Assembly (NCBI GenBank): GCA_965235115.1
Contig: OZ249436.1
Location: forward strand, 17,484,001-17,548,000
Reading direction: 5' to 3'
Length of the DNA stretch: 64,000 nt
Source of the DNA: Laetmonice hystrix
Taxonomy: Eukaryota
Position numbers and translations under genes: made by a program. Shown here piece after piece: positions 6,216 through 64,000 of the stretch. Below the pieces are notes generated by a model. It saw only the letters and a program-made list of their open reading frames with translations, searched no databases and was not told the origin of the DNA. The first letter of the stretch is position 1. The number at the start of each line of letters is the position of its first letter.

Positions 6216-9200
6216 AGTGTCACTCACACAGATCGATCTCTCGGTGTTCAGGAAACGGTTTTACTGAGATGGTGTTCACAAATGTTCACTCCGTATTTAC
6301 AGAGACGGTATTTTACGGTATTTTAGACACAATCTAAAACTCAATGTTCACAAGCGTGAAAGTCTCGGTGTTCACAGACATGAAGAGTGTCTAGACTGTC
6401 TATGACTGCTGTGTTCACCGTGAGACGGGGACCATCCCGCCACCGCCACCCCAGACATATTCCTGACATACTGCCCTAAACTTTACACAATGCCCCAGGC
6501 ATCAGGACTGATTCATCATGGACGAATGACAGGAACAAAAAGTAATTCCACTTTTCTTTCTCGCTCGGAGCGTTACAGAGCGGTATTTCCCCCAAGTGCC
6601 TGGGCCTTGAGGTTGACGCTAAAACAAGCGCCAATAGAGCGCTGGCCGCCGATTATACACCGTCTCAATCCCTTTATAACTGATTATTACATGTATGTAC
6701 TTATATTCTTAACACCTTGTAATCCTACTTATCGGTAATCTCATTGATCCCCCCACCTGTGTGTATAGTGGCGCCCTATAGTCGGAAATCATAATCTTTT
6801 AACCTATTTTTGAGACAGTTCTTGGTAGCGGTTTGTAGTGGAAGGTGAGCTTGGCTGACCACACCCGGAACATGACACGAATCGTGTCCGAGCAAACTGC
6901 AGGCTGTAGTTTTATTGCTGCAGTATGTTGGACAATATGGCGTCGGGTGTCATATATAGCTGTAGTATTCAAGTGGTCATCAAACGTTGCTCAGGACGGT
7001 CATGAACAGTCGACGCGCGTCTCCCAAACCCCCCGCACACCCACCACCCACACACACGGTGAGCGTCCACGCGCGGCCAGCTCATTAAACGTGATAAAAC
7101 CATTCAGTAAAAACGGAGGGGGTCGGGGGGTCGGTAAAATAACTCCTGTTGTCATGGCTGGAGCAAAGCTTGGCCTGTAGTCCTGTATCCTATTTTAAGG
7201 TGTAATCAGGGATTTGATTATGTGCAATGAATAAACGTAAGAAATAGATAGGATCCATCCTGGATGCCCCAGTGAAGGGTTGCAACCCTCCCCCCTCACC
7301 CGTGAGAAGTGGACTCGACTATTGACTGGCAGTTCGACCTGGCTGCCAGTGAGAGAACCGCAGCTTGCTGACTGCTGGCTGGCAATGCTTGCTTTCCGTG
7401 CCGCTATGCTCTAGATACTACCGCCCTGCTCCCCGAATCTGGCGTATTTCAATACTCCTGCCAGCCTGCTAACGACGCCTGGATAGCGTCTGGTTGGCCC
7501 AGCCCCCGCCGGATCCCACCTACAGTGACCCCCGCCCTTGTTGGATGATCAGGACGGACATCGGTCACAACACGAGGATAGTGTTTGTTGTCAGCTGCTG
7601 CCGCCGCACGCGCTCGCCAGCCAGCGGCTTACTGGAAACAACGTGGTCAAAATGGAGGCAGTTCAAATCTGGGTCAGTCACGGCCGCTGCCGTACTTTGT
7701 GTGAGGAATAGTAAACTGTGTGTAGGGGGGCTGGGCTTGCACGGAACCGGTCCGGCTGCCCGCCCCGGTACAGGTGGACACTTCCCGGCTGCACGTCCAC
7801 ATCAACACGTCTGCCTCACGGTCAGCGGCACGGACGTGGAGTCAGTGAACGCCCAGCACTAGCGTCTGTTTACGTCGTCACGACACTGGTCAGCGTACCC
7901 GCTCCCTCCCTCAGAGCAGAGGGCGTCGGTCGGTGACGCCTACACACTTTTGTTGTTGTTGGAGGCGCCAGCAGTGTGGATTATAGTAGCGCCACGCTTC
8001 ACGTACAGGACGTAGGGCGGACAGAGACGCCTTGTGGGTTGTGATGTTATGAACATGTCGTCTGCCCGAGAATGGCGGGCAGCGTTTTGTGGAGGACGTT
8101 GTGGACGTGACGTTACGCTTGACGCGGCGGTAGGATAACGTAACGTTACGGACGTGGATTATACGCACCTTTCACACCTCCGTCTCTGGAGGAGAGAACG
8201 TGTTACGGAAACCCCAGCATCAGCGGCTACAAGCCCCCACCCCCCTCCGACATAAATTATAGACGGCACAGGAAGAATGCAAGAGGTAAATGTCTAATGT
8301 ATGTGGACCATGTCCATACTCTGGTACTCCCATAGTCGTACCATGGAGTGGAGTGGCAGACTGGCAGATCTGGTGACAGTCCTTTGACACCAGCTGTGGT
8401 GGTGGTGGAGGTAGCCGCCACATGTCCAACCAAAGCCCGCAGCCTTCCGTGCATGGGGAGAAATGGGGTCAAAACGATTTGATAAGTTAATCATGATTCA
8501 TAGTCAGTTGTGGTAAACATCATTATCCTGGTAGAACATGCAGAGTTGGGTCCAGGAGAGAACAGGGGAAATTGACGTCAGAGGAAAACATGGCCACATG
8601 TTTGCCGCCCACATTAATTTACCCGGTTCTCACTGGGAGTTTATTTGAGCACTAAATCATTCATTCATAGAAAGAAATCTTTTAGTTTTAAAAGTAGATT
8701 GGTTTCGGCTGGGCCCCCAAACTATAAAGATGGTCTGTGTATGCTAATGGGTGGAAATCCTTTCACAGGGAGAGATTTACGAGTGTAAGCGGTGGTTACA
8801 TAAGATCAGATTGAGTAGATTGTGGAGACAAGTGGTTTTAAAACCGAGGACGTGACACGATCGTTACGTCATTTATTGATGGTGATTTGTGGGTGTCACT
8901 TTCTCGGTGGTTTAATGAGAAATTGAGAGAGCATCTCACAAAGTCTCATGAGGTGTTGTGATGGGGGCTGGGGGTCAGCGGGCCATTGAGGGGAGGAGGT
9001 AATTATTGTAGGGTTGCTATGTTTGGGTAGGTGGATTGTCGCTATATAGTTATACCCCAGTCATCAGTCTAAACATAGGCCAGGCAGGAAGTAATGGCAC
9101 TACTTAATCTGACTTGAAATTAGAAATTGAATATTCAGGGGTACATTGTATTCAGTTTTAGAAGTATCTTGCTTTTGTAGGGTGTTTGTTCAAATTAGGA

Positions 9201-31162: not shown

Positions 31163-31362
31163 TCTCTCTAGGTCTCCCTAGCTCTCAACAACGTTTTAAG
31201 CCTGTATGGAAGGTTGGGTTGTTGGCGATCTCACCCCAAACCTCGTTTTTATCACCTTCCACGAGCAGGGGTCAGCTATACAACTGCTTTGAGTAAATTG
31301 ATCTCGTCGTGTTTTAAACAATACAAAGTTCATTAAATACCAGAGGAGATCTTCGTTCTTAC

Positions 31363-34210
31363 CTCTACTGGTTGTGCTGGATTCATCTCTCAACAGATCA
31401 CAGCCGAGATAGTGCATCCACATGATCTGCGTTTCCTTTTTAAGGAGGCAGTAGAAGACAAATATAAAAAGTCCTTGTAAGGTGTTAAAGATGGCGAACA
31501 GGTAGTGGAACACGATGCCAGCGCCACCTATCGCGAAGAAAGCGAAACCCCACGTAAGCCCGAGCAGGACCATGATGCTCACGGCCCCGCGCAGGCGCGA
31601 TAGCATGGTGACCCGTCTTGACCTGTCCAACTTCTTACTGTCCATGATCCGCAGTTGGTTGGAAACGAGGCCGAACGTCACAAGGTTGAGGACCAGGATA
31701 ATTGTTACCGGGGCCAGGAAGGTTACGAAAAATGGCGTCCTTGACAACCAGCATCTGTACGTCAACAACGGCCAAAAGGTCATTAGTTTTAGACATCGGA
31801 AAAATCACGGAGGGTGGAACCTATACCCTCTCTGTACTCTACTCAATTTGTTGAGTAAACAGTGATTGGTTTTGTTTAAGGTTTGTTTCTAAATCAGATA
31901 TTAAAGTTCGACTCACATTTCTCCCTGTAGGCCGTAGTTACTCGTGTTGACAGCGAGCGTAGACAGGACGATGACCAACGGCGAACCTGGAAACGGGAAA
32001 TGTCTACAGGTCCTATTGGGCTAAGCTACATCAGACACAGAGAGACAGTGGCTACATAGAAATGTGGGCCCTATATGGTTACACCAGACACAGAGGGACA
32101 GGGGGTACATAGAAATGTCGGTCCTATACGGATACACCAGACACAGAGAGAAAGGGGTAGGCCTACATGGAAATGTAGGTCCTATATGGTTACACCAGAC
32201 ACAGAGAGGCAGGGAGTATATAGAAATGTAGCTGGGTCCTATTTAGGCCTATTTAGGCTACACCAGACACAGGGAGACAGGAGGTACTACATAGAAATGT
32301 CGCTCCTATATGATTGCACCAGACACAGAGGGACAGGGGTACATAGAAATGTAGGTCCTATATGGCTACACCAGACACAGAGACAGGGGGACATAGAAAT
32401 GTCGGTTCTATACGTGGTTATACCAGTGAGGACGGAGTCAAGGAGTGAACTTTTTGTTGTTTCCCGTTGGACGCTTGTTCTAACCTTTCACACCCAGACG
32501 TCATACCATACGTCACAGCGATCCTTGTCCCAGTGACCCATACGTCCCAGTGACCCATACGTCCCACTCATATACAGTGTCAGATTGGTGTCGTACTTGT
32601 CTCTTACTTACCCCAGCCGACGAGTACACACTTCAACATGAACTTGGTGTAGTAGGTCTGGAATACACGAACCAGGGCCTGGTACATGTAGAACGCTTCC
32701 AATGACATCCACACCATGGCCGCCAGGAGGCAGTAATGAGTGGCTGCCGCAAATATCTGGAGTGACAATGGGAAAATATACAGCAACGGGGAAGGGTCGA
32801 GGGGGCATGGTGGAACAGGGGGTCGAGGGGGCATGGTGGAACAGGGGAGGGTCGAGGGGGCAGGGTGGAACAGGGGGTCGAGGGGGCAGGGTGGAACAGG
32901 GGGAGGGTTATCTGGGGCCATGCTGCGCTAATTCAAGTTACGTTTATTCACGGCATTGAAAAGTATTTGCCCTGAACAAAGCTATATTTAAAGCTACTCA
33001 AGGTTTCTCCTGGATTAGTTGATTGGGACCAGGCGGACGGACAGACTAGCAGAGACACCCATAGTTACCATACATATTCACTTGTCGATATTACATTATT
33101 ATGCTCTACATCAATTTTACGACACATCGCTTGCGTTCATCGTGCCACACGTCGCGACGCGCGGCCCAGTGTTGGCGAACATCGCGTACCTTGCAGGCGA
33201 TGTGGTTGCCCCTGACGAAGCCCTGGGTGGTGAGGACGAAGGCGATGATGACCCCCAGCAGCGCGGCTGTCAGGTTAACCAGGATCTTGGCTGGGTTCTC
33301 TGTCCTCAACTTCCTGCAGCACAAACCCGCAATGGACACTTACTTCCTGGTTAGGCCTAACTTGTGGAACATCTCAAATCCTCACCTTTAGACGTTCTGC
33401 CTTTAATTCAGGGATATGCGTGGATTTGTCGTCGGCTTATCAAGAAACGAGATAGATCTAAGCCTATTTATGTATAATCTTCAGCGAATCCCATGGAATC
33501 CATAGCTGTAGCAGGATACCTAGGCCTATCTCTAGGCCTACAGTTAATGCTCAATCGACTTCCCATAGTACCACCACAGTTACCCTTGTACACGTCAGAG
33601 GGCGCCACCCCTAACACAGCACGTAACCATACATGGATAACACGCACGCTCACTGGTTAATGATATTACTATTTTTCCAATCGGAACACTCCGGCAATTC
33701 CCGGAAGAAGTCGGAGGATGGAAATAGCCTCGGACAGTGTAAGTGCAATTTTTGCAGACAAATATTTCCCGATTTTCAATTTTGTACTTAGGCAGGCGTG
33801 ATCAGTCCCAGGTGGCTCTTACCGAAAGTCGTAATATTTAGCAGCCAACACGCCTCCGATCACCAGCCTCCGATCTCTTCTAGGAATAATATTGTCAAAG
33901 TGTTTCAACTGCCACTTTTCGTCTGGTGGTGGTTGGGTTTCTTGGGAGACAAATTAATTTAAATATTTCTAAATAATGTCCGGTCAGAAGCCAGAAGGTA
34001 TGAACGTGTTGATTCTCTAACAGATGCCACCACACGGCGCTGCGATCGCAGTGTGCCCTCTGAGGTGCGCCCTGTCTCCTACCTGAATCCCAGGTATGTT
34101 ATGAGGGTACACAGCAAGCCGAACCCCGACAACCCACATCCAATGTACGAGATGTACGACAGCGCCAGCTGGTGACCTTCGTCTATACTACCGGCGTTCC
34201 CATAAACGTC
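31363..34210 (-). CDS. aGPCR secretin-like 7TM region, 5 exons
   Basis: LALSYISYIGCGLS, KLRTENPAKILVNL, THYCLLAAMVWMSLEAFYMY, VGWGSPLVIV, CWLSRTPFFVTFLAPV, LRGAVSIMVLLGLTWGFAFF, YLFAIFNTLQGLFIFVFYC are typical ADGRG-type TM motifs. Confidence 0.96.
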
Positions 34211-59125: not shown

Positions 59126-59485
59126 CATTCGGGATTTCCTCGGGCATATGACGTCATTTCGGCTATTTGAATATACCATCGGGTGATTTGAGCGTCACTG
59201 GGGTCGAGATACATGACGAAATGGGCCTGTGTAGTGAGGCAGTGAGTGAAACGTCATATCTGATCGAGCCAGCTCGTAGTGCCTTCCTGAAACATCCTCC
59301 ATTGGCTTCGTATGTGCAAATATAAATTTCTGATATGAAGGCAACCATTTGAAGTTGAAAAATCATTCATCTAATTTACTTAATTTGCCGTAATAAGGTA
59401 ATTTATCAAATTATGGGAAGCAATATGGCGGCTCTATTCACCCGAGGGGACTTTCGAGTAGAAATGACCAAGGCATCCCCGATTG
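59126..59485. mobile_element. Diverged inverted copy of the 53459-54018 MITE family
   Basis: The reverse complement of 59126-59430 aligns by eye with 53718-54018 (e.g. GCCATATTGCTTCCCATAATTTGATAAATTACC). Decayed right TIR TCCCCGATTG and decayed TSD (GGTATACGA / GGTAggccTATACGA). Confidence 0.75.
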
Positions 59486-59570
59486 GGTAGGCCTATACGA
59501 GTGAGGATTTACGGAAATCCGAGGGAGCGCGAGTGTGCGGTCCTTTGCAATTGGTCCTATAGGCTACTTG

Positions 59571-61102
59571 TTAGAAAGCAGAGCGCCGAACCGGTTTTAA
59601 ATATAAGAGTGGCGTTGGTAGGTCCACGACGCAGACAGCTGGTTGATTGGCGGCCGATGGGAGAGTGACGTCACTGGCACCAATCACGTGTCCCGTGTCC
59701 ATGTCAACCGTTGTCATGGTACGTCTGAAGACGAACTTACAACTTTCATCAGCACACGCCTCATCATCCTTGGGTCTGTAGTATCCGCCTCCGATCACAT
59801 AGAGTGTGCGACCCACGACCACGGACCCTGCCTGGGAGTGACCCCTTGAGAGTGTGGCCAGTACTGTCCACTGCTGTGTTGTCATGTCCAAGACCTCCAC
59901 GGGCAGAACGTTACGGGCCTCACCATCCACCCTGTCCCTTCCCCCACACACCAGCACTCGACCCGGCACGGACCCAGTCGTGTGGTCCATACGACGGTTA
60001 AACATGGCCGGACCCCTGGTCCACCGCTTCTCTGGGGACAAACGGCTTCCGTCATACACAATAACAGTCGGGATAACTTTCTCACCCGTGGAACCACCTG
60101 TGACGTACACCTTCCCGTTACACACAACACTCGCGTGAGCCCACCGTCTAACCGTCATGGTGGCCTCCTGACTCCAGGAAAACGTCGCCAGGTCTAACCG
60201 CTCGGATGACTTGAGAACCTGGCAACCATCCCGTCCCCCAGCGACTAGTATCGCCCGTCCACACGGCAGAGTATCCGCCGTAAAGTAAGTCCGGGCTGAC
60301 TCCATCCCCGGAAGGTTATACCACGAGTCAGAGAGGTAACAGTACAGAGAACTCTCTCTTTTTGCTTTAGGGTTATCCGGAACGAGTTTATCCTGGCCAC
60401 CTATAAAAATCAGGTATGGTCCAAAGGCTACAACTTTAGAATTGACTGTGGTGACGTGAGGTTTGTTCACAGCCACCCACGGCTGGGGCTGACCGTCAGG
60501 AGAGTGTTGGGCCGCCATGGTGGCCGACACCATATCGTCCTGAGCACAACCTCCGACCACAGCCACACAGCGGGTCGTCAACACGAACGATGAGCGGATG
60601 CCAAGTTGGAACACCTTATTACTCATCAACATTTCACCAATTTCCGTTTTTCTGTCTGCAGTTTTGTGCAGAAACGTTGCAGAATCGGATAAATTGAGTT
60701 CACCAATTAGCTTGTTGAGTTGTTTTAAACTAGCTTGTTGAGAGGCCTGTTTAATGATCTCATTTAAACCAGGAATTTGGAAGTATCCGGCCACCTGGCG
60801 GATGACCTCGACATCAGTGGTTGTCACGGACAGGGCGCCTGTATAAAGTACGTCAAGCATTCTGTCCAGGCCCTCTGCCGACATGTCGTCGACCTTCACA
60901 CGGGGACATACACATTGTTCTGTTCGATCTTTGATGTACGCCGAGTATGAACAAACAAACTCAGAATGAATTGGGAACTTGATTCTTTCCTTGGTGACCA
61001 ACTCTCTGTCGAAACCTTCTTGTCGATGCCGCCGTGACATGTACTGTTTTGTCGTGTTGGTCACGTGGTTCTTAATTTTATAGATCGGCCTCTTGTCGGA
61101 TT
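59571..61102 (-). CDS. Single large exon: divergent BTB/POZ + short linker + six Kelch repeats
   Basis: FDRELVTKERIKFPIHSEFVCSYSAYIK...MSAEGLDRMLDVLYTGALSVTTTDVEVIRQVAGYFQIPGL (BTB). Six GG-dipeptide blades (VAVVGG, LIFIGG, ILVAGG, VYVTGG, VLVCGG, LYVIGG), with downstream W residues in blades 1-5. Confidence 0.93.
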
Positions 61103-62639
61103 CTGTAAAATAGAAAACACTTATTAAAATGCGTTGCGTAGTACCATATGGCGCAGCCTGTCCTCCTGACGTAGTGCGTACGGTGACACAGCCTGTGCCG
61201 TTGGCGTGGTACCATGGACAGTCTGTGTTGTCGACAGCGCTTTTTTTGCAAAGTTTAATCAGTCTACATCGGCCGCGGATCAAGGACAATACTGCCGTGA
61301 AATGACAAAAGGAAGCAAGTCCAAAGTTCAAGTTTCGAGAAATGGACATAAACAAGTTGTCTCTACAGTGCAGTTTGATGGACATGCTTCCTTCTGTCAT
61401 GTTACTGATAGCTTCATAGAAGGATGTTTAGCAGAAATACACCCATTGGTAGATAGGACTTACTTCCCTGAATCCAAATTTACACATAAGGCGATTTTGA
61501 TGAAAGTTGGACTTGCTTCCTTTTGTCATTGCACGGCAGAATAGATCCAACGTCAGCGATATTGTTGACGTTTTTGTGGGAATGAAATTAAAGGAAATAA
61601 TATCAACGGTGCGGAGGAGAGGATCCAGGATTTAGAGAAGCGGGGGCAAAGGGGACAATCTGGCAAAAGGGGGCCCAAAGAAAGCTGAACGTCCGAGGTC
61701 GGCCCGATTCTGTAACTGGGGGCTAAACTCAACTGTTTTTTCAAGGCATGCAGTGCCTGGGGAAAGAATCTAAGGAAGATAAGGCAGGCAAGTTTTCTTT
61801 AGGTCAGTAGAGATTTGGTCCACTTATCTACCCTCCCTGAAACAACTTCACAGTCACGTTTGTTGAAGGAAGTATTGATAGTTAGCATTAAGAGGAAGTC
61901 AAGTGGGAAGATCATTCACACAAAGATAAAGCGTTCCACCTTTGACCCAGTAACCGAGACGTTGAACCACGTGACCCTGCCTGGTCAATCGCAGCACATC
62001 CAGGAAGGCGTACACATCTTCTAGAGGTTTCTCTTGGATTAAATCGAGCAGAAATATGTTCCGCTCCCGTTTCGACTTTTCAGATGTCGCCTAAAACATA
62101 AATATACCTTCATTATTTTCAGAGGTTCCTGAAGAAAGGGACACTTTAAAGTGCCCCCCCCCCCCAAAAAAAAGAATTCCTCAAATATTTACATTTGAAC
62201 CCCAGGGACACCATCTTAAAACTTCAGGTTTGAGCCGAGAGTATTTTAAAAATGAATTGGGTTTAAAGGTAAGTGTTTGAGGAATTTGGGATGCCACCTT
62301 AATGTTCTGTTTCAAAAGATTTATCTGAATGATCGTAGCGCTCGAAGAGACGTCATACCTTTAGTTGTTCTTTGTCTTGACCAGTTAATACACTTGAAAC
62401 ATCAATTTTAGTAATTGCATCTACGTCAATGAAGTCCTGGATGTCCGATATGGCGTCATGGAAGTCTTTCTTGACAAGTTCTTCTAAAGTCCCTGGGTCC
62501 TTGATGGATACCGGCTGCTTGGGCTCTGCTGGATCTTCAGTAGAAGTAGCTGCATCCTTCGTGTTGGGTTTCCTAGTTTGGCCGGCCTTCTCCTGTGGGT
62601 CCTGGCCGGCTGCTTGGTCCTTCCTGGGCGGACCTGTAT
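59571..62639 (-). CDS. Predicted CARD-BTB-Kelch protein, 5'-incomplete (further exons expected beyond the window)
   Basis: Exons 62639-62359 (acceptor TAACAG, donor AAG|GTATGA), 62090-61940 (acceptor TTTTAG, donor AAAG|GTGGAA) and 61102-59571 (acceptor TTCTATTTTACAG, stop TAA). Phases 1-0-1 join with no stop, giving about 650 aa in the window. Confidence 0.75.
61292..61539. mobile_element. 248-bp MITE with 4-bp TSD, in the intron before the BTB-Kelch exon
   Basis: TIR CTGCCGTG(A/C)AATGACAAAAGGAAGCAAGTCCAA (about 33 bp, 1 mismatch); direct repeat AATA at 61288-61291 and 61540-61543. Confidence 0.85.
61940..62639 (-). CDS. Two exons encoding a low-complexity linker and a CARD-like death-fold domain
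   Basis: Spliced peptide LEELVKKDFHDAISDIQDFIDVDAITKIDVSSVLTGQDKEQLK|ATSEKSKRERNIFLLDLIQEKPLEDVYAFLDVLRLTRQGHVVQRL (about 90 aa). By eye it fits the CARD pattern VLT..D.E.I...T..ER...LLD.L..K....F..FL..LR...Q.H....L. Confidence 0.75.
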
Positions 62640-62655
62640 CTGTTACAAGTACATG

Positions 62656-64000
62656 TGTAACAACCACTTTTGTCACTTTTACCACTTTTGTCACAGGTCA
62701 CCACTTTTGTCACACAAAATGCCCACTTTTGTCACAGGTCACTTTTGTCACAACGTCGCCCACTTTTGTCGTTCTTAAGGACATCACTTTAGTCATAATT
62801 TTTTGACCGGTTTTGTTAAACTTGTCAAGGCCAAAAAAGACAGCGTGGCAGAAATGAGATGGTTTACGGATACAGATCCATGAAGTCAGGGGCACATATT
62901 GCATTAGTTGATATTAAACTTTTACTCCTTCATGAATAAATAATAATCAAGTAAGCAAGATCTGTGTGGTAAATCGAGTAGGTGAAAGCTATGCCAGTAT
63001 ACGCCCTCCTCTAATAAAGTCTTGTGCCATAAATACCAGGTAGTGGTTTCTATTGTCCAGGTTTGTTTGTCACACCTCACGCCGGCGACTCTGTACGTCA
63101 GTCAGTTACAGTCAACAGTTTTACCTGTAGACAGTATGACACCGCCAGACATGCTTGGTTGTACACCTTGTTTTCATTTGGACAGACAGGACGGTGGAAA
63201 TGGTGTCTTGATTAATGTGAAATATGTTCTACCTGTAAAAACCTTCTGATGTTTAAGTCGGTGTTTACTTATATTGCTTTGTGGTAAAGAATACACTAAA
63301 ATACAGCCATGTAGGCAATTGGTTTTGGAGGTGAGATCCTAATTTGTATATAAATGACTGTAACTATGTTGGCTTGACGTTGGGTGACGACTGTCGTATG
63401 CAGAACGTCGGTGTCACGTGCCTCATTGTCCATGGTGCCCTGATTTGATCATTTTTGTTAATATGTTTTAATGAAATCAACTTGCAGGAAGAAACTATGG
63501 ATGGTCCCCCTATTTTTAGTGCTACAGACGGGATCTACACCTCCAGGGCTTTGGTTGTTGCCTGTAAAATGTTTTTATTTTAGTAAAACAATGTGGTTGT
63601 GTGGGACACCACTCTGGAGGTCCAGTTTGACCTCTCCACTATATAAAGCCAGGAAACGACTTGTCAAATGTACAGTGAACGGTTACGTCTGAAAGTATCG
63701 CTTAGATAGACTCGGGTCTGTCTCCCATGAACTGGCTGATGGGTCGGAAGGAGCTTGCATGGGTCCACGTTCGGTCGTAGTCTGGCAACATGTGCTGATG
63801 GTTCAAACACTGACAGTATGATGAGTCACTTAGTGTCCACTTGGAGGCGGGAGGGTGCAAGCCTGAGAAAAGTGCGACATGACTCTTCTAAAGGGATGTA
63901 GCAATACAACCCGTTCCCCGTCAGTGGGTCGATCTGTGGCACGGTTCCGTATGGCGGCTATCATTGGGTTATCACGTGTTGTCTCAGACGCCAGATCTTC
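62656..64000. mobile_element. Second, near-identical copy of the 45477-47748 element (runs off window end)
   Basis: Colinear with about 45477-46830, with only scattered substitutions and small indels by eye; same left TIR. Confidence 0.92.

Follow-up and report, generated by a model that had tools for sequence, protein, structure and literature searches.

Part of a six-exon gene lies on the minus strand of the Laetmonice hystrix stretch analysed here (contig OZ249436.1, positions 17,484,001 to 17,548,000; hereafter the window, 64,000 nucleotides in full), and its predicted product combines two N-terminal domains of probable CARD type with a BTB domain and a Kelch propeller. The best overall explanation, which we favour as reasonably probable, is that this is a tandem-CARD BTB-Kelch gene, a divergent member of its family, encoding a sensor/adaptor; the gene model and the domain order themselves are very likely to be as predicted. 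The three exons proposed by the initial annotation (62639-62359, 62090-61940 and 61102-59571, minus strand; exons A, B and C below) were all found exactly at those coordinates, and with the proposed junction phases, 0 between A and B and 1 between B and C, the joined frame runs without a stop down to the stop codon at 59571-59573. Its guess that further N-terminal domains lie outside the window was also borne out, as a start exon (E1) and a two-exon CARD1 (U1 and U2) are located 3.0-3.9 kb upstream (the three together at G000:C1:17549678-17550490). The full model comprises six exons and 771 codons on the minus strand without a stop, all its introns are GT-AG with phases 0, 0, 1, 0 and 1, and the gene spans ~6.9 kb, of which ~2.5 kb lie past the window end. 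The protein it encodes would consist, in order, of a short N-terminus, CARD1, a disordered linker, CARD2, BTB, a ~55-residue helical linker and a six-bladed Kelch propeller. Neither exon C nor the upstream exons contain a NACHT or NB-ARC domain, the 771-residue product being fully covered by CARD1, linker, CARD2, BTB and Kelch. The features are as follows; those with the prefix L041 lie beyond the window end.

59571..61102, minus strand: exon C (last exon), 510 residues encoding BTB, short helical linker and Kelch propeller
59616..60578, minus strand: six-bladed Kelch beta-propeller, exon C residues ~175-495
60606..60767, minus strand: short helical linker in place of a full BACK, residues 112-165, three helices, pLDDT <50 at 125-151
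60735..61022, minus strand: BTB/POZ domain, exon C residues 27-122, AF2 pLDDT 85-94
61103..61939, minus strand: intron B-C, 837 nt, GT..AG, with a very high-copy repeat at ~61176-61577
61940..62090, minus strand: exon B (5th coding exon), phase 0 to phase 1, C-terminal half of the probable CARD2
62091..62358, minus strand: intron A-B, 268 nt, GT..AG, containing a dispersed short repeat
62359..62639, minus strand: exon A (4th coding exon), phase-1 acceptor at 62639, phase-0 donor
62359-62499, minus strand: part of exon A (A-core), N-terminal half of the probable CARD2
62500-62639, minus strand: part of exon A, Pro/Gln/Lys-rich low-complexity linker
62640..64000, minus strand: 3' part of intron U2-A (3,038 nt), continuing past the window end
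L041:1678-1816, minus strand: exon U2 (probable CARD1)
L041:2141-2305, minus strand: exon U1 (probable CARD1), Pfam CARD positions 7-39, E 0.04
L041:2446-2490, minus strand: start exon E1, 15 codons

Exon A opens at the acceptor at 62639 (aacag/AT, phase 1; the slash marks the exon border), with a second phase-1 acceptor 6 nt downstream (atacag/GT, exon start 62633), and ends at a phase-0 donor at 62359 (...CTAAAG/GTATGA). Exon B extends from the acceptor at 62090 (TTTTAG/GCG) to a phase-1 donor at 61940 (AAAG/GTGGAA), and exon C begins at a strong phase-1 acceptor at 61102 (TTTTACAG/AA). Independent short-read DNA contigs confirmed the exon sequences with no indels, and showed four coding SNPs, three of them synonymous and one Ser-to-Asn. 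A search of sequencing runs found no RNA run that includes the locus, and the contigs of one sample (three runs) cross the exon C acceptor unspliced, being genomic; 'joints' in the three DNA-contig runs were considered as splice junctions and rejected as repeat artefacts. The exon B donor GTGGAA is weak, as it lacks the G at +5, whereas the paralogues have GTAAGT at exactly the same position, and read-through would end at a stop after 13 further codons, leaving a product with CARDs alone. Possibly, then, the studied copy is decaying or makes another product, the exon B donor being skipped, a CARD-CARD-only protein or no stable protein being made, and the BTB-Kelch part being a relic, and the long tree branch of this copy would fit such a course as well. 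However, no exon is disrupted, the 510-codon exon C included, the three SNPs within exon C are all synonymous, the exon C acceptor is strong, and comparison of the studied copy with its paralogues gave dN of ~0.35-0.5 against dS of 0.7 to above 3, which serves as a rough guide only, since dS is mostly saturated. We regard decay as quite improbable, and continue with an intact gene.

Both introns that lie wholly within the window contain repeats. The repeat of intron A-B occurs in >80 copies elsewhere in the genome (query positions 333-469), and short-read DNA depth rises from ~50 to 500-1800 across 62114-62381; over the repeat of intron B-C the depth of DNA reads reaches 33,000-300,000, compared with ~45 in unique sequence. 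The ATG at 61400, which opens a mechanical 609-aa ORF (59571-61400), was considered as the true start and rejected, since it sits inside the intron B-C repeat, and the paralogues have no conserved ATG, their coding conservation beginning at the acceptor. That ORF, along with an in-frame Met 22 residues into exon C of the studied copy, could suggest two genes, one CARD-only and the other an independent single-exon BTB-Kelch gene with its own ATG. Yet neither Met has a counterpart in the paralogues, although their coding sequence is conserved up to the shared phase-1 acceptor; moreover, exon B contains no stop before the conserved phase-1 donor, and the joined frame is open in 20/20 complete models. 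Two separate genes are thus highly improbable, and we treat the six exons as one gene. Apart from one GPCR exon, the window's remaining long ORFs consist for the most part of repeats or low-complexity sequence.

The studied gene belongs to a lineage-specific family of ~25 loci, most of which form one cluster at C29:6.6-7.7 Mb, the paralogue loci L021-L040 being placed on C29, C7, C20 and C21; since three copies carry two CARD2 units, 27 such units are counted across the ~25 loci. The six-exon layout, with identical intron positions and phases and intact ORFs, was found at 20 of the 22 paralogue loci examined. All 21 paralogous BTB-Kelch exons are preceded by exons A and B with matching splice positions and phases, and an exon A homologue with a conserved donor is present in 22/22 loci. 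Such recurrence makes this set of exons more than a chance arrangement. Nucleotide similarity to the paralogues is limited to the exons and stops at their borders: 23 paralogue units align to 8925-9067 of the oriented locus, where exon B occupies 8915-9065. The amino-acid identity of exon B to its paralogues is 48-53%, and that of the studied copy to other members 45-54%; together with its tandem neighbour the studied copy is the most divergent of the family, the two lying on long separate branches at the deepest split of the tree, across which the shared exon layout is maintained. The linker of the studied copy is non-repetitive, while other members have 12-residue repeats.

That exons A and B encode a CARD-type death fold is, in our assessment, probable rather than proven. 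The reading of their joint peptide as CARD-like, put forward in the initial annotation, is supported, exon B having profile and Atlas matches; the N-terminal half was not recognised when taken alone, and for the studied copy the evidence as a whole is sub-threshold and convergent. Only the exon-encoded halves were scored against the Pfam CARD profile (PF00619, cut-off 23.9 bits), and no half-domain reached the cut-off; the best scores were 17.4 bits for the A-core of a paralogue (L033, profile positions 12-40), 14.6 bits (E 0.033) for exon B of the neighbouring copy (L042, positions 42-82) and 14.4 bits for U1 of the studied gene (positions 7-39), and the A and B halves of the studied copy gave no Pfam match. 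Across the family, CARD matched U1 in 6/12 members (7-39), the A-core in 2/14 (12-40, best E 0.0047) and exon B in 1/14 (42-82). Nevertheless, CARD was the commonest Pfam match on each of the three half-domains and in the correct register, and the intron falls at profile position ~41/42, as in other split CARDs of the same genome. In profile searches of the PDB, U1 had the RAIDD CARD as its top match (E 0.08) and exon B the MDA5 2CARD (E 0.2). The initial annotation had likened the peptide of exons A and B, residue by residue, to Apaf-1-type CARDs; our profile searches matched those of RAIDD and MDA5 instead. The PDB profile matches of the A-core and U2 were only designed repeat proteins and were rejected as artefacts, since these are scored by summed short matches.

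In the ESM Atlas, exon B of the studied copy fell into a top cluster of CARD (score 0.91, 196/256 shared features, 43/100 matches), and its ten best matches were all of the CARD family; the A-core, submitted at 61 and 47 residues, yielded no usable family. When the exon-B family profile was run against the genome, 10 of the 19 non-family matches fell on CARDs called by Pfam, on the same strand and about in register, although such places cover only ~22 kb of the 627 Mb genome, while the A-core profile recovered family members only and no outside CARD. With hhalign, an alignment of CARD2 with CARD1 extends over the position of the intron (local E 4.5e-4), whereas their N-terminal halves (A-core and U1) gave no alignment with the same program. 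Reciprocal similarity to accepted CARDs was found for the C-terminal half only (exon B profile, PDB and Atlas). Co-folding of the two CARD2 halves of the studied copy as separate chains gave an ipSAE of 0.37, compared with 0.01 for the best control, a result which the tool rates as 'weak support', its mark being reached by 51/78 solved complexes and 2/108 mismatched pairs, and a pass at <=0.60 being wrong oftener than right unless the pairing was likely beforehand. In these models pLDDT was 72-73 (36-55 in controls), partner pLDDT was at least 71, and the runs agreed in at least 96% of contacts. Given that every Pfam CARD match stays under the cut-off, that exon B of two members weakly matches Dredd_N, a DED-type domain (E 0.11), and that the N-terminal half of CARD2 went unrecognised in the Atlas and the genome profile search and gave no alignment with that of CARD1, exons A and B could form a helical domain other than CARD, i.e., a DED-like death-fold subfamily or an unrelated module that matches CARD by composition. 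The register of the Pfam matches on all three informative exon types, the genomic places struck by the exon-B profile, the Atlas neighbours and the shared intron position all argue against it, and such a domain is, like decay, rather improbable; we retain the CARD assignment below.

The BTB and Kelch domains of exon C are more readily recognised. Both were confirmed against Pfam, BTB with PF00651 at 42.1 bits (cut-off 20.5, E 1.1e-10) and Kelch with Kelch_1 at 87.6 bits (E 3.4e-25). Foldseek aligned the model to the Kelch domain of KEAP1 with a target TM of 0.92 (E 1.9e-26), and the exon C model has end-to-end structural matches to KLHL31, KLHL22, KLHL15, KLHL14 and KEAP1. Between BTB and Kelch, no Pfam match to the BACK domain (PF07707) was found, and MAFFT alignment with KLHL24a and KLHL30 revealed that ~75 BACK residues are absent; the ~55-residue helical linker is the remnant of BACK. 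In the AF2 model, two helices follow the BTB domain where the 3-box would lie.

In animals, BTB-Kelch proteins typically serve as CUL3 adaptors, and in the complexes of KLHL11, KLHL3 and SPOP the hydrophobic-x-Glu loop of BTB contacts CUL3. It would be possible that the protein serves CUL3 as a substrate adaptor, its BTB domain and BACK remnant forming a putative CUL3-binding surface; either the CARDs would bring the ligase to CARD signalosomes, where components would be ubiquitinated, or the propeller would select the substrate and the CARDs would only localise the complex. The typical role of the class, the end-to-end resemblance of exon C to KLHL31, KLHL22, KLHL15 and KEAP1, the two helices at the place of the 3-box and the Glu of the loop, which the studied copy retains, are all in line with this. 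On the other hand, the BACK domain is largely missing and the linker is modelled with low confidence, and the loop reads R-T-E in the studied copy, whereas the paralogues show Q-[ILM]-S and the aligned KLHL proteins H-R-E, F-A-E and M-K-E. Hence, the Cullin-3-type wiring that the initial annotation had proposed is doubtful, and we consider a CUL3 adaptor unlikely; a sensor/adaptor acting through its CARDs is the reading that we follow.

Selection differs among the parts of the protein. The median pairwise dN/dS was 0.35 for CARD1, 0.47 for CARD2, 0.38 for BTB and 0.79 for Kelch. In windowed analysis, the BTB core stays at 0.1-0.4 and peaks of 1.2-3.6 recur in several windows of the propeller (values above 1.2 at exon C residues 187-201, 212-225, 276-295, 331-354 and 410-449), these estimates being drawn from pooled, non-independent pairs with low dS, in which gene conversion could mimic peaks. 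Since the family has expanded and the propeller evolves fast, an immune role would fit; the immune or apoptosis regulator suggested by the initial annotation agrees with our data to this extent, whereas the way in which it would act is one that we infer.

Tentatively, we propose a cytosolic sensor/adaptor mechanism that follows the tripartite scheme of innate-immune receptors, and we would give it somewhat less than an even chance. The fast-evolving propeller would bind its target, a ligand that varies or a guarded host protein; dimerisation would come from the BTB domain; and the tandem CARDs would relay the signal by assembling homotypically with caspases or adaptors that carry a CARD, many of which are encoded in the same genome, with its ~90 CARD genes. 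With BTB-BACK-Kelch proteins of the KLHL/KEAP1 type the protein shares the succession of BTB domain and six-bladed Kelch propeller, and the structures align from end to end; unlike them, it adds two N-terminal CARD-like domains and a disordered linker, its BACK is cut to ~55 residues, its CUL3-contact loop is not conserved, and its family comprises ~25 copies, which are clustered and whose propeller evolves fast. Tandem N-terminal CARD-type domains (three in three paralogues) placed before a sensing module are likewise seen in RIG-I-like receptors, as in the MDA5 2CARD; the studied protein, however, possesses no helicase or C-terminal RNA-binding domain, its presumed sensing part being a Kelch propeller and its middle a BTB domain. 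With NLR and Apaf-1-type proteins it would have in common a death-fold effector at the N-terminus, a middle module that self-associates and, at the C-terminus, a sensor built of repeats or a propeller; both have also expanded in a lineage-specific manner, and in both the sensor domain varies. Apaf-1 uses WD40 propellers as its sensor. In contrast to these proteins, there is no NACHT or NB-ARC domain, and BTB is a dimerisation fold and not a nucleotide-driven switch; the analogy is thus functional only and implies no membership.

The initial annotation had held a CARD, BTB and Kelch combination to be uncharacterised, and we likewise found no protein or paper with that architecture. Searches of protein databases with exon C alone, with a 16-paralogue profile, and by phmmer against 1.84 billion representatives returned no close relative, and no match with PF00619; a search with exon B and its open frame gave no candidate. 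The only single-stretch relatives were P0079 and P0140, both from one ENA assembly, with ~37% identity over the Kelch part. A tandem-CARD BTB-Kelch architecture is apparently undescribed.

Signalling in cell death and innate immunity is wired through death-fold domains, and BTB-Kelch proteins make up a major class among the proteins that bind substrates or ligands. We speculate, at odds that we consider rather low, that the family could represent an unrecognised class of animal innate-immune receptors, expanded to ~25 copies in one lophotrochozoan lineage, in which LRR or WD40 sensors would be replaced by a Kelch propeller under diversification and the NACHT oligomeriser by a BTB dimer, with the tandem CARDs setting off caspase or NF-kB-type signalling. 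More generally, upstream signalling domains can hide behind single-exon 'BTB-Kelch' ORFs in such genomes. If expressed, the gene would constitute a new coupling of a propeller sensor to CARD signalling. It would also provide a fresh case of invertebrate receptor repertoires built through exon shuffling, the CARD2 unit having a phase-1 intron on either side and being present twice in three of the copies, and a testable entry point to the immunity of a poorly studied phylum.

Joined by script on the minus strand of 59400-64000, the three exons named in the initial annotation (exons A, B and C) give an open frame, and their coordinates proved exact, since splice sites, phases and frame all match on joining:

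62639-62359, minus strand, exon A: phase-1 acceptor aacag/AT at 62639, phase-0 donor AAG/GTATGA at 62359.
62090-61940, minus strand, exon B: TTTTAG/GCG at 62090, phase-1 donor AAAG/GTGGAA at 61940.
61102-59571, minus strand, exon C: phase-1 start after TTTTACAG at 61102, stop at 59571.

Exon A has a second phase-1 acceptor 6 nt downstream of the first, at 62633, and holds no in-frame ATG. The exon-B donor lies at the same codon position and in the same phase in all loci of the gene family and reads G/GTAAGT in nearly all of them. The GTGGAA donor of the window copy, as was suspected at first reading, is a real weakness; skipping it would leave a CARD-only product whose frame closes after 13 further codons. 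The guess that further N-terminal domains lie past the window was borne out when the 8.4 kb preceding exon A was compared by tblastx with the upstream regions of paralogues, which revealed two more conserved exons, U1 and U2; together with a conserved start exon, they lie 1.7-2.5 kb beyond the window end (positions in L041, the region past that end):

L041:2446-2490, minus strand, first coding exon: 140 nt upstream of U1, an ATG and 11-14 codons, terminus ...W-x/GT.
L041:2141-2305, minus strand, U1: 55 codons, phase-0 acceptor to phase-0 donor.
L041:1678-1816, minus strand, U2: 46 codons and one base, phase-1 G/GTAAGT donor, compatible with the phase-1 acceptor of exon A.

U1 and U2, with conserved splice sites, are found in the window gene and at 20 of 21 paralogue loci, and were not found within the 10 kb around the remaining one, L035. 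Automatic assembly of the window gene yields a 771-codon open frame, and intact frames with all introns canonical GT-AG were obtained in 20 of 22 loci, the two exceptions being modelling gaps, not stops. The results support the CARD, BTB and Kelch architecture first proposed and extend it to two CARDs in tandem, with CARD1 encoded upstream by U1 and U2, and CARD2 by the C-terminal part of exon A (A-core) and exon B.

The window corresponds to G000:C1:17484001-17548000. Searching the assembly (627 Mb, 35 contigs) with exon C revealed about 25 loci at 46-54% identity, mostly clustered at C29:6.6-7.7 Mb; one of them, on C1, is a tandem neighbour lying 10 kb upstream. When 10 kb around each of 21 paralogue loci was compared by tblastn, homologues of exons A and B were found upstream of all 21, in conserved order and strand. 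The exon-A donor AAG/GT and the exon-C acceptor acag/AA are likewise conserved, coding conservation begins exactly at the latter, and nucleotide similarity between the window locus and its paralogues is confined to exons. Genome-wide profile searches found 27 copies each of A-core and exon B. Three loci on C29 (L021, L022 and L024) carry two CARD2 units in tandem, and hence three CARD-like domains; the unit is flanked by phase-1 introns on both sides, and therefore its duplication preserves the frame. A maximum-likelihood tree built on exon C places the window copy and its C1 neighbour on long branches that split off early, outside the tight crown of C29/C7 copies; the shared layout is therefore ancestral to the family. 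This neighbour, L042 (G000:C1:17554705-17564704, just past the window end), is a tandem paralogue of identical exon layout, 43-46% identical to the window copy in exon C and about 50% in exon B, with an exon-B donor shifted by 6 nt. The exon A linker before CARD2 contains in L023-L040 tandem 12-residue repeats (consensus about Q-T-D-G-P-D-T-S-D-Q-L-V), in about 2 to about 17 copies depending on the paralogue; that of the window copy is non-repetitive, Pro/Gln/Lys-rich and free of such repeats.

We consider it probable that exons A and B encode a CARD-type death fold. When each of the four exon types (U1, U2, A-core and exon B) was tested as its own alignment, Pfam CARD was the most frequent family on three, each match having the expected register and a score below the 23.9-bit cut-off: U1 matched in 6 of 12 members, at best with E 0.0034 (window gene E 0.04, profile 7-39); A-core in 2 of 14, at best with E 0.0047 (profile 12-40), along with one CARD_2 match; and exon B in 1 of 14, with E 0.033 (profile 42-82). 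These in-register matches on each half therefore place the exon junction at about profile position 41/42, where other CARD genes of this genome are also split (pairs 1-41 and 42-82). In PDB profile searches, the top matches were the RAIDD CARD for U1 (E 0.08, residues 6-44) and MDA5 2CARD for exon B (E 0.2, last helices of the second CARD). In the ESM Atlas, exon B of the window copy alone fell into CARD clusters (top score 0.91, 196 of 256 shared features), 43 of its 100 hits belonging to the CARD set (recognition 2421). The strongest test is the reciprocal genome search with the exon-B profile, which gave 27 family matches and 19 others; 10 of these 19 coincide in strand, and roughly in register, with CARD places called independently by Pfam, which occupy about 22 kb of the 627-Mb genome. 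Moreover, hhalign aligned CARD2 with CARD1 (local E 4.5e-4, 55 columns spanning the intron position), as well as their C-terminal halves alone (E 0.0011). Co-folded as separate chains, the two CARD2 halves of the window copy reached ipSAE 0.37 vs 0.01 for the best control, with partner pLDDT of at least 71 and runs agreeing in at least 96% of contacts; this is rated weak support. Of 78 solved complexes 51 attained the mark, as did 2 of 108 mismatched pairs, but a pass at or below 0.60 is wrong more often than not unless the pairing was likely beforehand. Taken alone, the N-terminal half of CARD2 of the window copy was not recognised by Pfam or the ESM Atlas, the A-core profile found no CARD outside the family genome-wide, and hhalign found no similarity between A-core and U1. 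An exon-B-like match outside the family, at G000:C30:6493168-6493290 on the plus strand (28.2 bits, E 0.001) and absent from the Pfam CARD scan, may be a distant CARD2 relative in another gene. Large arrays comprising dozens of near-identical single-exon CARD ORFs lie at C19:16.9-22.4 Mb (about 128 aa) and C29:2.7-6.1 Mb (97 aa), a possible pool of CARD partners.

Exon C scores 42.1 bits for Pfam BTB, against a cut-off of 20.5, and also matches Kelch repeats (Kelch_1, E 3.4e-25), with no BACK match in Pfam. Its AlphaFold model, based on an alignment of 16 paralogues and two outside ORFs (mean pLDDT 79.8), comprises the BTB domain and the propeller, joined by three linker helices (residues 112-165, modelled in part at low confidence). 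By Foldseek, the propeller matches the KEAP1 and KLHL17 Kelch domains (target TM 0.92, E about 1e-26) and the whole model matches those of KLHL31, KLHL22, KLHL15, KLHL14 and KEAP1 end to end. Aligned by MAFFT with three BTB-BACK-Kelch proteins, KLHL24a and KLHL30 among them, exon C is short of about 75 BACK residues, and the BTB loop, H-R-E, F-A-E or M-K-E in those three, reads R-T-E in the window copy and Q-[ILM]-S in paralogues. CUL3 is contacted by the hydrophobic-x-Glu loop and the first BACK helices, as in the KLHL11, KLHL3 and SPOP complexes. CUL3 recruitment is therefore not a given; for the window protein it is an unproven and somewhat weakened prediction. Two ORFs on long contigs of ENA assembly ERZ26222911 (P0079 and P0140) match linker and propeller in one stretch at about 37% identity; another organism may thus possess the family or the BTB-Kelch ancestor of it.

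Median NG86 dN/dS, calculated for pairs of paralogues whose dS fell between 0.05 and 1.5, was 0.35 for CARD1, 0.47 for CARD2, 0.38 for BTB, 0.60 for the linker and 0.79 for Kelch; between the window copy and the others, dN is about 0.35-0.5 and dS mostly saturated. Sliding-window dN/dS across 20 non-C1 copies, a pooled, non-independent estimate that gene conversion could distort, was 0.1-0.4 in the BTB core and peaked at 1.2-3.6 in the propeller (exon C residues 187-201, 212-225, 276-295, 331-354 and 410-449). A search for RNA runs covering the locus found none. The runs that do cover it (three, of one sample) are genomic contigs, unspliced across the exon-C acceptor, and thus the splicing is a prediction from comparative evidence; they confirm the exon sequences with no indels and with four coding SNPs, of which three are synonymous and one changes Ser to Asn.

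Very high-copy repeats occur within the introns of the gene and upstream of them, and a GPCR-like ORF, probably one exon of a GPCR gene, lies elsewhere in the window:

31199-31783, minus strand, GPCR-like ORF: 7tm_2 (secretin/adhesion-type), E 2.9e-14, profile 148-250, C-terminal half.
61176-61577, 62114-62381 and 62650-63300, repeats: contig depth up to 300,000 vs about 45 for unique sequence.

The element in the intron between exons A and B, with more than 80 dispersed copies, often in inverted pairs about 200 nt apart, looks MITE-like, and 62650-62800 consists of successive GTGACAAAAGTG-like units.

Searches of an index of 5.8 billion sequences and of 1.84 billion representatives, those by word index being of limited sensitivity, returned nothing closely resembling exon C, none of the protein matches listed for it carries a CARD, and a full-text literature search of incomplete coverage found no description of BTB-Kelch fused to a CARD or other death-fold domain; given these limits, the lack of a precedent for the combination amounts to absence of evidence. 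The family is a variation on KLHL-type BTB-Kelch proteins, combined with the shuffling of death-fold domains in invertebrates. Tentatively, and at somewhat less than even chance, we favor as its most likely role that the protein would serve as a sensor or adaptor in CARD signalling, equipped with a variable propeller.
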